This document shows, one piece after another, positions 45,001 through 48,000 of a DNA stretch of 64,000 bases (position 1 is the stretch's first letter; every line of letters begins with the position of its first letter). A program made the position numbers and the translations under genes. The notes beneath the pieces are model-generated. The model did not search any database. It was given only the letters and a program-made list of their open reading frames with translations, and had not been told where the DNA came from. The stretch is from Podarcis melisellensis (taxonomy: Eukaryota). The stretch lies in assembly GCA_964234715.1 (NCBI GenBank), contig OZ174276.1; one strand, given 5' to 3'.

Positions 45001-48000
45001 GCGTTTAAATTTTATGCTGTGCCAGGAAGGGGAACCTTTTTCAGCCTGAGGACTACGTACTGCATTCTGGGCAAGCTGCCAACGGCAGTGAGGCCAGCGG
45101 CAGAAGTGGGCAGAACAATTAATGTAAATTTTACCTTTGTAGAATAGGCTAGTTTCTACACCCACTCACATACCCTCATGCATCCCCCATCCAGGCAAAC
45201 AAGAGGCAGTAACTGAGTTCATGGGCAGATTTCAGCCTGGCAAAAACACTCAGGGTGCAAAACAGGGTCAGTGAGGGGTGTGGCCTGGGCAAAGTGCCAG
45301 GAGCCAGACAGAGAGGCTTGGAGAGGTGCATTCAGTGGCAGAGCTTCATGCTCTGGCACCGGGGGCAGAGAGGAGGCGGGGGCATGGCTGGCGCACGTCT
45401 CAGGAGTGTGACGCACCACCTGCGGGGGCAGGGCGCCCAGTGCGGGTGGGGGAGCAGCCCTGATGGCACCCTGGGGATCGCGCTGCCAGGGGCGGTGCAC
45501 TCCCCTTGCACTCCTCTTCCTCTGCCAGTGGCTGCATTGTGCCAGGACCTGCATTGTACCCTTTGCGTTTCCCAGCTTTTAGGACCTTCTGTCCACAAGT
45601 GTGAAAGTTGCACGGAAACTAAAGAGTCGTGCTGGAGAAGCAGGAAACGTTTGCCTTGTTGGCTTTTCCTTCAGCAAATGAAATATGGGGGTGTCCATTT
45701 CCCCCTTAAATCTAGACTGTGAGATAAGCCTGGAGCAAATCCCTGAGTCTCTTTAACCAGGAGAGTTTGAAATACCTCTCCTTGCATTTTCAATACTCAG
45801 ACCCTCTAGCCCAAACAGGGAGTCTCCAGAAGCCAAAGTACAATATTCTCTGGCCATTCTGAACTAGAGCATGTGATGGTTCAATAACAGCAATGGGAAC
45901 AGTGCATAGAACATAGATCACACCACACTGTGTGCTTCAGCAGCAGCGTCTACCGAAGAAGAGATTTGCTGCTTATTTTTGCACTAGGAGTTAAGTATAA
46001 TTAGCACGTGACAACCCCCTCCTCTCTCTCTTTCTCTCTCCCTGCCTGACTCAGATGCCTATCCTAAAAGTGAGATTATTTACACCTGGAAAAAAGGACC
46101 ATTGTATTCGGTGGAAATTCCACAAGAATCTTCCAGTCTTCTCCAGTATGATCTTATAGGGCAAACAGTCTCTAGTGAAACGATAAAATCCAATACAGGT
46201 AAGATCACACCTGCATGCAGGGTGTCAACATTAGAATATGACCACTGAGATTTTCAACATGGTACTTTTTACACGCTCACAGTGTGATTTGTCTATGTGT
46301 CCAATGGCCCGCTTGCTCCAACTGCTAGTCCTTTGGAGAATAAATAAATGTATCTATTGCTGGGAGTTCTGATTGCTCCTCCCAGTTCCAGGCCACATCT
46401 CTTTTCTGCCATGCAGAAGGCGGTTATAGGCTGATGTGCAAAGGCAAGGAAGCGGGTGTGTTATGGGACAATGAATTCACACTTTGCCTCAAAGCTTCCT
46501 AGGCAAAACAAGCTAAAATACCATTTTATTTGCAAGGTTTATATACAGCAGGAACACTTGGGAAATACAAGATGTTGTCTTGGGTGTAAAATTCAGCTTC
46601 CTGTGCTCTCTTTCATTACCCCCCCCCAAAAAAAATTGTTTAGTCCATATGGTTGTGAAGTTATGCCTGGAAATTTGTGGACAATGTCTGTTGAAATCTG
46701 AGAAGCCTAGCATTTCAAAGGGACGTGGACAAGGCCTCCCTAATATAAAGTAAAACCAGAATTCATTGAAAAATATGGGGAAAATGCAAAAGGGTAGAAT
46801 ATGTTTGCAAATGCAGCTTTTCCTGATAACAGAATTATTATTTTTTAATGATGAATACACACAGCCCTCCCTATGTGTTTATTTAAGACATTCCAAGATT
46901 CTCTAATACATGGACAAAGATAATGCTGATATACTTGTTTCCTAACAGGTGAATACGTAATAATGACTGTTTATTTCCACTTACAAAGGAAGATGGGCTA
47001 CTTCATGATTCAGATATATACTCCCTGCATCATGACAGTCATCCTCTCTCAGGTGTCTTTCTGGATTAATAAGGAATCTGTTCCAGCTAGGACAGTTTTT
47101 GGTATGCTGGTATTATCATTCTGCCCGAAACCACTCTGCATCATTCCATTTATCCACCATTTTTCATTGCTTTGTGTGTTTCTCATAGGCGAGTATTCAC
47201 TTCAGGTACTCTATTTTCATCTGCAAAGGAAAATAGGCTACTATCTCATTCAGACATACATCCCCTGCATTATGACTGTAATCCTGTCCCAAGTTGTGTT
47301 TTGGATCAACAAAGAAGCTGTCCCAGCAAGAACTGTGGCTGGTATTCATGCTTTCTTCTCATGACCTTCATTTGCTCGTTGCTTCGTTCGTTCAGGGTAT
47401 TGTACTGCGATAGAGATTAGCATTGTTTTTAATTAAAGAATGTGACAGAGGAAAACTATGTGTTGAGGATTTACCTGGGGGTAAGTGCCACTGAATCTTC
47501 TGTGTAGTCATGGATCTAACTGAACTCTTGCTGGGGAGATGGTTTCTAATGAACTTCCATAGGATCTCATTGCAAGCCTGTAGCTCTGCGGCTCTAGGAA
47601 TTGAGTGCCACTGAATGCTTCTCTGCTCCTGCCAGTGGAAATGAATAGTACTTGCTGTGGCTTCTAGCTCAGGCTGTAAATCTGTTTATTGGGTACATGG
47701 CAGTTACACAAAGAGAAGTTGGTGTGTGCAGAGCTTGGAAGCCTGAAAAAGGATACATACAGAGGCCTAACAGCTTCCTTGTCACCCTTATTTTGCAGGG
47801 ATCACCACTGTCCTCACAATGACTACGTTGAGCATCAGCGCCCGCCACTCTTTGCCCAAGGTGTCTTATGCTACTGCCATGGATTGGTTCATTGCTGTGT
47901 GCTTTGCCTTTGTCTTCTCTGCACTTATCGAGTTTGCAGCTGTCAACTACTTTACCAATCTTCAGACTCAGAGAGCAATGAAGAAGGCAGCCAGGGCGGC

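Follow-up and report, generated by a model that had tools for sequence, protein, structure and literature searches.

Tandem copies of exon 7 in the GABRA6 gene of Podarcis melisellensis, an old pair of homologous exons coding for alternative versions of the M1 segment

The alpha-6 subunit of mammals is described with a single exon for the M1 segment. In the window analysed here, a stretch of 64,000 nucleotides from the lizard Podarcis melisellensis, two versions of that exon follow each other within the GABRA6 gene, which raises the question of how the second one is used: it may replace the first in a share of the mRNAs, it may be spliced together with it, or it may be a relic that is not spliced at all. 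We consider it very likely that the two, named here exons 7a and 7b, are a tandem-duplicated pair of homologous exons and that each mRNA carries one copy.

The exon pair and the gene around it

Exon 7a (positions 46949–47101), the canonical form, and exon 7b (47189–47341), the alternative form, are both on the plus strand and are separated by a spacer intron of 87 nt (47102–47188) that begins with the 7a donor GTATGC. The initial annotation had described two 153-nt, phase 1-1 exons with AG/GT borders at this distance from each other, and re-reading of the sequence confirms the description exactly. In either exon two bases finish a Gly codon and are followed by 50 full codons and one further base. 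The copies are identical at 103 of 153 nucleotides (67%) and at 37 of 50 residues (74%), leaving 13 residue changes; different codons stand behind 23 of the 37 shared residues, and direct reading of both exons found no stops or indels, a recount that agrees with the figures given at the outset. The differences at codon positions 1, 2 and 3 number 10, 8 and 31, respectively. Between the 60-nt flanks of the two exons identity is only 32–37%, the level of unrelated sequence, and thus only the exon has been kept from the duplication. An open reading frame (46930–47361) runs in frame and without stops through the spacer; we attribute this to chance, as the stork spacer is 80 nt long and not a multiple of three.

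Exon 7a codes for the beta10 strand after loop C, the pre-M1 region, M1, the M1-M2 loop and positions 0' to 3' of M2, and its peptide is identical to the solved human alpha-6 subunit (PDB 9oum chain C, residues 226–274). Exon 7b codes for an alternative version of this segment, from beta10 through M1 to the start of M2. Both peptides match the Pfam family Neur_chan_memb, 7a with an E value of 1.7e-10 and 7b with 6e-11.

The remaining exons were also located on the plus strand of the window. Exons 1 to 5 (36056–41002) were placed by tblastn of two database proteins, P0166 (Podarcis muralis alpha-6 isoform X2) and P0191, as blocks with approximate borders at 36056–36091, 36266–36442, 36976–37047, 40555–40776 and 40877–41002. 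Exon 6 (46055–46198, 144 nt) is a 100% tblastn match to P0166; it is preceded by a CAG acceptor and followed by GT at 46199, and its last base opens the Gly codon, to be completed by 7a or by 7b. The intron between exons 7b and 8 (47342–47798) begins with the 7b donor GTATTC, and exon 8 (47799–48058, 260 nt) codes for what remains of M2, for M3 and for the first part of the M3-M4 loop. The outer junctions are those originally proposed, with exon 6 ending at 46198 before GT and exon 8 starting at 47799 after AG. The first 264 nt of exon 9 (63364–63627), 15.3 kb downstream of exon 8, code for the M3-M4 loop and M4, and its reading frame continues beyond 63627 to a stop after a 16-residue stretch. 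Over most exons the window is 100% identical to P0166 in tblastn. Window exons were searched singly and full-length comparisons were made with database proteins; judged by sequence, the gene is the GABRA6 ortholog over its whole length.

Age and conservation of the two copies

The exon occurs in tandem, with AG and GT at the borders of both copies, in the window, in two lizard-like contigs (L001 and L003), in a stork (L006), in the tailed frog Ascaphus (L007) and in a sturgeon (L008). Both exons are present in sharks, reedfish, sturgeon, lungfish, a mormyrid, frogs, birds and lizards; a search for the genomic loci behind the shark (P0163) and reedfish (P0162) sequences found none on record. 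The 7a protein is 100% conserved in L001, L003 and the stork, and identical in mammals. Synonymous sites are saturated between 7a and 7b (pS 0.72–0.95), and this saturation, together with the recurrence of the pair across species, rules out an assembly artefact or a recent copy.

A dN/dS comparison and an exon phylogeny including alpha4 had been proposed with the initial annotation. Between species, dN/dS is 0.05–0.21 for 7b and 0–0.05 for 7a, and exon 7b is 80–92% identical at the nucleotide level, whereas the adjoining introns are poorly alignable (52% mean column identity for the intron between 7b and 8). In the exon tree every one of the 23 7b-type exons sampled, ranging from sharks to lizards and with teleost alpha-6a among them, falls into a single clade (support 100/99); the tree, built on 51 columns, has no resolved order among 7a, alpha4 and alpha1/2/3/5. 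The sequence comparisons place the duplication before the split between cartilaginous and bony vertebrates, and they indicate that purifying selection keeps both copies in sharks, non-teleost ray-finned fishes, lungfish, frogs, turtles, birds and squamates. An old duplication under purifying selection had been suspected from the window itself, and the pS and dN/dS values bear this out.

The sole exon 7 of teleost alpha-6a is of the 7b type and carries a segment ending in PARTVAG, which the initial annotation had suggested for teleost alpha-6 and which proves to be real; most teleost alpha-6a genes have retained 7b alone. No mammal is among the 7b-type hits listed. With the pair present from sharks to lizards, the earlier idea of an ancestral pair followed by lineage-specific loss is supported.

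Transcripts and the choice between 7a and 7b

In public gene models of Sceloporus, Anolis sagrei and Pogona, 7b alone runs straight into exon 8, and the same holds for models from three turtles, dozens of birds, many frogs, bowfin, sturgeon and bichir. Two Logan cDNA contigs, the bird-type L009 (3038 nt) and the frog-type L010 (1840 nt), hold intronless, full-length 7b-only reading frames. These models and contigs lend support from other species to the initial proposal that a transcript carries 7a or 7b. RefSeq models already contain exon 7b, one of them from Podarcis muralis; no paper describing the GABRA6 exon pair was found in the full-text literature searched.

One could suppose that in this lizard 7b is an unused pseudoexon, that 7a alone is spliced and that the 7b models are prediction artefacts. 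A search with region 76–126 of P0151 found no lacertid RNA-derived reading frame with 7b, and the Logan contig L002/P0011, in which an intact 7a is followed by a decayed 7b-like stretch, indicates that 7b does decay in some lineage; as mammals share the 7a sequence, this contig may be of mammalian, even human, source. Against this stand the open frame and intact splice sites of 7b, the persistence of its dN/dS range over more than 400 million years with three lizard-like sequences included, the full-length 7b-only cDNA contigs from a bird and a frog, and the 7b-only isoforms annotated in the three squamates, and we regard a relic as highly improbable.

A second set of public models, from Podarcis muralis, Pogona, stork, owl, frogs, lungfish, sturgeon, reedfish, sharks and a mormyrid, chains 7a and 7b into proteins of 500–540 aa, and in some frogs the listed isoforms are either 'both' or '7b' only. 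No 7a-only model from a non-mammal was among those retrieved. The chained models reflect either some double inclusion or chimeras made by annotation pipelines. If the exons were usually included together, alpha-6 would be lengthened by a second M1 segment; the reading frame would be preserved, and the tetrapod spacer, at 80–111 nt and with normal GT..AG ends, is of a length that can be spliced. However, judging from the topology of pentameric channels, the protein would cross the membrane once more with a second M1, and M2 to M4 would end up misoriented. Such chains can also arise when an annotation pipeline combines homology to proteins (7a) with evidence from RNA (7b), and the full-length 7b-only cDNAs exist. 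Moreover, RT-PCR spanning exon 7, as published for a turtle, yielded a product of about 300 bp, compared with 311 bp computed on the window for single inclusion and 464 bp for double inclusion, and therefore showed the single-inclusion size only. Habitual double inclusion seems to us improbable.

The exclusive use of one exon, which we prefer, is supported by these observations, the chained models apart. Podarcis melisellensis would then splice 6-7a-8 and 6-7b-8 and make two kinds of alpha-6 subunit, identical but for the beta10 strand that follows loop C, the M1 helix, the M1-M2 loop and the opening turn of M2.

Three mechanisms were considered as enforcers of this exclusivity, namely steric clash, nonsense-mediated decay (NMD) and spliceosome type, and none was found to account for it. 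The likeliest branch point is about 64 nt from the 7a donor, a distance not clearly too short for splicing; this distance and the sturgeon spacer of 1449 nt exclude steric hindrance as a sufficient cause. Since 153 nt keep the frame, NMD would not clear an mRNA with both exons, and incompatible spliceosomes are rejected because every site is GT-AG. Elsewhere the spacer measures 87 and 84 nt in the lizard-like contigs, 80 nt in the stork and 111 nt in Ascaphus. In the window it holds a long pyrimidine tract and, about 20 nt upstream of the 7b acceptor, the sauropsid-conserved block TTTCATTGCTT.

The homologous exons 3A and 3B of GLRA2 are regulated by Nova via intronic YCAY/UCAU clusters. A YCAY cluster is likewise present in the GABRA6 spacer, with eight motifs in 87 nt (9.2 per 100 nt vs 1.65 gene-wide), and the spacers of L001, L003, stork and Ascaphus contain four to five each. 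The enrichment is modest (dinucleotide-shuffle P = 0.016), the count being reached in 9 of 2792 sliding windows. The cluster is sited where Nova binding would promote 7a and repress 7b, and the 7b donor GTATTC, with T at +5 in lizards and stork, may be the weaker one; we take both as leads, and Nova control of GABRA6 as a lead only. The choice between 7a and 7b may be regulated by cell type.

So modest an enrichment also fits a choice that is stochastic and unregulated, between isoforms that are functionally equivalent. We think this unlikely, as at five positions the 7a-type exons, without exception from shark to lizard, differ by fixed residues from all those of the 7b type, a pattern difficult to account for unless the two have distinct functions, and as teleost alpha-6a, which is 7b-only, is reported to be almost confined to the photoreceptor layer of larval zebrafish (PMC5922542). 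On our preferred reading of two alternative subunits, 7b might be a retinal or photoreceptor form.

Residue differences, related exon pairs and significance

The changes fixed in 7b throughout the clade are, in alpha-6 mature numbering, V/I209S/A, M211Q, M221I/L, F224Y and F256A, and the replaced residues M211, F224 and F256 are invariant in every other sampled alpha exon. Exon 7b also replaces Ile228, which we take to be the alpha-6 determinant of furosemide sensitivity. The swap of 7a for 7b may alter the pharmacology or gating of the channel. A joint reading can be offered, tentatively and with more doubt than confidence. In it, 7b would be an ancient photoreceptor or retinal alpha-6 and 7a the form of cerebellar granule cells and the CNS, with a Nova-type YCAY switch selecting between them. 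The forms would differ in furosemide sensitivity (residue 228), in the M1 face of the neurosteroid and anaesthetic pockets and at M2 3'; mammals would have lost 7b along with photoreceptor expression of alpha-6, and teleosts would have divided the forms between alpha-6a and alpha-6b.

Like GLRA2 3A/3B, the GABRA6 pair consists of tandem, equal-length, homologous alternative exons in a vertebrate Cys-loop anion channel. The GLRA2 exons code for extracellular domain, differ in only a couple of residues and are kept in mammals; in GABRA6, by contrast, M1 and the beginning of M2 are exchanged, 13 of the 50 residues change, and no such pair was found in mammals. Insect Rdl, too, is a GABA-gated chloride channel with duplicated exons, 3a/3b and 6c/6d, which are mutually exclusive and alter agonist sensitivity. 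Unlike the GABRA6 pair, they are extracellular (ligand-binding loops) and of independent arthropod origin, and we know of no Rdl pair that swaps M1. The flip/flop exons of AMPA receptors (GRIA1-4) and exons 8/8a of CACNA1C are equal-length homologous pairs that retune a neuronal channel in its gating or pharmacology and leave the architecture unchanged; CACNA1C 8/8a swaps a transmembrane helix, as does the GABRA6 pair. These genes, in contrast to GABRA6, belong to other channel superfamilies, and their pairs persist in mammals, where they have been studied thoroughly. Mammalian GABRA6 itself is the orthologous gene, whose human segment is exactly what 7a codes for. Exons 5a/5b of SNAP25 are described as an ancient vertebrate tandem exon duplication that yields two mutually exclusive neuronal isoforms (PMC2581893). 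SNAP25 differs from GABRA6 in that it is a SNARE protein and no channel, and that its pair is kept in mammals.

Counts of GABA-A receptor diversity are usually based on mammals and comprise 19 genes together with a small number of cassette-exon variants. The pair described here would mean that alternative splicing has exchanged M1 and the beginning of M2 for more than 400 million years in most jawed vertebrates other than mammals. As the exons are equal in length, RT-PCR sizing and most probes cannot separate 7a from 7b, and this may explain the absence of the pair from the literature searched, despite its annotation by pipelines. 'Alpha-6' pharmacology in frogs, turtles, birds and fish may refer to either form. 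The locus would provide a clean example of an ancestral exon pair that is reduced to 7b in most teleost alpha-6a genes and not found in mammals, and its fixed differences (M211Q, F224Y, F256A and others) would amount to a natural mutagenesis set for the function of M1 and M2.

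Structure of the exon pair and its gene

In the window, stop-to-stop open reading frames and tblastn of database proteins delineate a GABRA6 gene of nine exons on the plus strand. Exons 1–5 (about 36056–41002) were placed by these two means, and the splice boundaries of exon 6 (46055–46198), exon 8 (47799–48058) and exon 9 (starting at 63364) were read directly. Two plus-strand exons of 153 nt, 7a (46949–47101) and 7b (47189–47341), lie between exons 6 and 8, separated by an 87-nt spacer; direct reading places AG before and GT after each. Both are of phase 1-1: between the two bases that finish one Gly codon and the single base that opens the next lie 50 full codons. 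Their translations agree at 37 of 50 residues, 23 of these 37 being encoded by different codons (script count). Nucleotide identity is 103/153, with 10, 8 and 31 differences at codon positions 1, 2 and 3 respectively, and the 60-nt flanks of 7a are unrelated to those of 7b (32–37% identity). The coordinates, lengths, phase, spacer and both codon counts of the initial annotation were reproduced exactly by reading and script. Both peptides match Pfam Neur_chan_memb. In comparison with solved structures the 7a peptide is identical to human alpha-6, and the 7b peptide is of alpha type, nearest to alpha-4 and next to alpha-6.

Alpha-6 isoform X2 of Podarcis muralis (P0166) matches the window at 100% across most exons (tblastn), and its 7a and 7b segments are those of the window, including the lineage-specific KEAVPA. 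Against window 36266–36442, exon 2 of P0166 closes with an additional RGSPG behind ...RLRPGFGG, which implies a donor 15 nt downstream of the one used for the other alpha-6 proteins. The C-terminus of P0166 (…KDTMEFFEPTAMHLRNDHQTN) is unlike the read-through ending found in the window. Intron 8 and beyond hold repeated tRNA-like SINE copies (about 49730–49906, 51630–51902, 53216–53641 and 57876–58120), a 249-codon ORF at 55135–55881 resembles a transposon remnant, and an (AAT/AAC)-type microsatellite lies near 41250–41295.

Conservation, selection and age

When the 7b peptide was searched exhaustively with HMMER, two Logan ORFs from related species (P0001 and P0151, on lizard-like contigs L001 and L003) proved to extend from 7a across the spacer into 7b. 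Locus retrieval and local tblastn showed tandem 7a/7b exons on these contigs (spacers of 87 and 84 nt), in a stork (Mycteria americana, 80 nt), in the tailed frog (Ascaphus truei, 111 nt) and in the sterlet sturgeon (1449 nt), with AG/GT at all four splice sites in every species compared. Across all species pairs, dN/dS (Nei-Gojobori) is 0–0.05 for 7a and 0.05–0.21 for 7b, so both exons are under purifying selection, as had been proposed from the codon pattern. Exon 7b is 80–92% identical to that of the window at the nucleotide level, and the spacer and downstream intron are poorly alignable. The possibility that 7b is a relic is made very unlikely by its low dN/dS, its intact splice sites and the far higher conservation of exon than of intron. 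Within species, synonymous sites between 7a and 7b are saturated (pS 0.72–0.95); together with the recurrence of the pair in lizard-like contigs, stork, frog and sturgeon, this confirms the initial claim of an old duplication.

In the window a single ORF of 144 codons (46930–47361) also spans 7a, spacer and 7b, as in the two lizard-like contigs but not in the stork with its 80-nt spacer. This open read-through frame is probably due to chance.

A maximum-likelihood tree was built from 51 exon-7 peptides (51 columns). The set took in the 7a/7b pairs of 13 species, additional 7b-only sequences, exons of alpha-4 and of alpha-1/2/3/5 type and, as outgroups, gamma, beta and glycine-receptor sequences. 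All 23 of the 23 7b-type exons form one clade with a long stem (support 100/99), the result of the exon-level phylogeny with GABRA4-type exons that had been suggested at the outset; 7a, alpha-4 and alpha-1/2/3/5 exons form a single unresolved group. Since the 7b clade spans sharks to lizards, these sequences place the duplication at least as far back as the shark/bony-vertebrate ancestor, its order relative to the alpha-4/alpha-6 split being left undecided by 51 columns.

In two teleost contigs (L004 and L005) exons 6 and 8 flank a lone exon of the 7b type. The 7b-like teleost segment mentioned in the initial annotation proved real: teleost alpha-6a has the 7b type as its sole exon 7. A hake model labelled alpha-6 (P0268) has a 7a-type exon, and Paramormyrops retains both in one model. 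This pattern would fit partition or loss following the teleost duplication. The proposal of an ancestral pair with lineage-specific loss was thus supported, by both exons in sharks to lizards and by the two 7b-only teleost contigs; for mammals, no mammalian protein is among the 7b-type matches listed, though this is the group with the densest annotation. On a Logan contig (L002, SRR26459678), ORF 210–623 (P0011) shows an intact 7a followed by a decayed 7b-like stretch (...SPQVVWWINKKCISARAL...). It would mark a lineage where 7b turned pseudoexon, possibly of mammalian or human source.

The 7a/7b pair is real, ancient and selected, and resembles GLRA2 3A/3B and insect Rdl, where tandem alternative exons also occur in Cys-loop receptors. 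More than 100 species, Podarcis muralis among them, have the 7b exon in RefSeq, UniProt and Ensembl-type models. In the non-subscription full-text literature on GABRA6/GABA-A splicing, no description of the pair was found. The pair is already in annotation and otherwise uncharacterised.

Transcripts and splice choice

Word-indexed searches that used just the 7b stretch of database proteins, with inspection of selected sequences, identified more than 100 named alpha-6 models that join a 7b-type exon straight to exon 8 (...PARTVAG/ITTVLTMTT). Models with 7b only come from squamates (Sceloporus undulatus X2, Anolis sagrei X3, Pogona vitticeps X3), turtles (Pelodiscus, Caretta, Pelusios), dozens of birds (e.g. 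zebra finch, pigeon, quail, ostrich, ducks, raptors, owls, manakins), many frogs, including the sole alpha-6 entries of Xenopus tropicalis and Bufo bufo, bowfin, sturgeon, bichir, reedfish, eel and arapaima, and teleosts, as the "alpha-6a" of tetraodon, cichlids, remora and others. Two uninterrupted Logan ORFs carry 7b without 7a: P0252 (465 aa, 3038-nt contig L009, SRR23174785) and P0169 (458 aa, 1840-nt contig L010, SRR27929940). Because a nine-exon gene yields such contigs solely via spliced mRNA, both contigs are RNA-derived, and the two ORFs are direct RNA evidence for 7b-only forms. In turtle spinal cord and cerebellum, RT-PCR of alpha-6 between primers sited in exon 6 and exon 8 gave one band of ~300 bp (PMC4274054). 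On the window, the product of these primers measures 311 bp if a single exon 7 is included and 464 bp if both are, and the band size argues for single inclusion. As 7a and 7b are equal in size, RT-PCR sizing misses the two forms.

Mutually exclusive use, as originally put forward, is well supported by these data from other species, but some models chain both exons: Podarcis, Pogona and Phrynosoma, one stork, one barn owl, several frogs, lungfish, sturgeon, reedfish, the sharks Stegostoma and Chiloscyllium, and the mormyrid Paramormyrops. In a 300-aa hypothetical protein of Xenopus laevis (P0002, OCT88350.1), a degraded 7a-like segment is followed by a degraded 7b-like one, and exon 8 is partly missing; the entry looks like either an alpha-6 copy in decay or a poorly built model, and intact X. 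laevis alpha-6 isoforms (P0183 and P0185) coexist with it. Several public models (P0274, P0275, P0270, P0266) run neighbouring genes together: a beta subunit is fused to teleost alpha-6a of the 7b type, an alpha-1-type gene to sturgeon alpha-6, and alpha-2 to alpha-4 in a tortoise. These fusions are in line with the conserved gene clusters beta2-alpha6-alpha1 and alpha2-alpha4, and they support the view that teleost alpha-6a and tetrapod alpha-6 are orthologous.

Nonsense-mediated decay (NMD) cannot enforce exclusivity, because double inclusion and double skipping both preserve the frame. The short tetrapod spacer alone suggested steric interference between 5' splice site and branch point. The best candidate branch point, the A of the conserved TTTCATTGCTT block 18–23 nt from the 7b acceptor, lies about 62–64 nt from the 7a donor, a distance that is not plainly too small, and with the long sturgeon spacer the steric model was rejected as a sufficient mechanism. 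Two features are leads to how the choice may be made. Eight YCAY motifs fall within the 87-nt spacer, compared with a gene-wide density of 1.65 per 100 nt (dinucleotide-shuffle P = 0.016; 9/2792 sliding windows equally rich); other tetrapod spacers hold 4–5. Lying downstream of 7a and upstream of 7b, the cluster would, on the known Nova map, favour 7a and repress 7b. The second lead is position +5 of the donor, which is G in 7a, and T in 7b of lizards and stork.

Consequences of the exon swap

Residues are numbered as in mature alpha-6 (peptide position n = residue 206+n), anchored by alignment to 9oum chain C and a signal peptide of 19 residues. Five positions have disjoint residue sets in 7a-type versus 7b-type exons of all sampled species: 209 (V/I vs S/A), 211 (M vs Q), 221 (M vs I/L), 224 (F vs Y) and 256 (F vs A). 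M211, F224 and F256 are invariant across all other alpha exons sampled, and majority residues also differ at 210, 212, 225, 237 and 242. The changed sites lie in the beta10 strand directly after the loop C Tyr, in the outer half of M1, at its inner end (flanked by the conserved Gln and Trp), and at M2 position 3'. Amniotes have IQIYTPC in 7a vs IQTYIPC in 7b.

Among sampled exons, IQIYTPC (Ile228/Thr230) occurs in 7a only of sauropsids and the solved human alpha-6, and 7a of sharks, ray-finned fishes, lungfish and frogs has IQTYIPC or IQAYIPC, like alpha-4; the alpha-6-specific M1 residues are thus an amniote novelty of 7a. Ile228 is presumably the M1 determinant of high furosemide sensitivity of alpha-6. 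If so, we infer that 7b receptors would be without this determinant.

In zebrafish at 96 hpf, detection of gabra6a is reported to be nearly confined to the photoreceptor layer, and that of gabra6b to be broader; the same study cites robust Xenopus alpha-6 expression in photoreceptors (PMC5922542). Since teleost alpha-6a has 7b alone and the Xenopus reference alpha-6 proteins carry 7b, this expression suggests that 7b may be the retinal/photoreceptor form of the receptor subunit.
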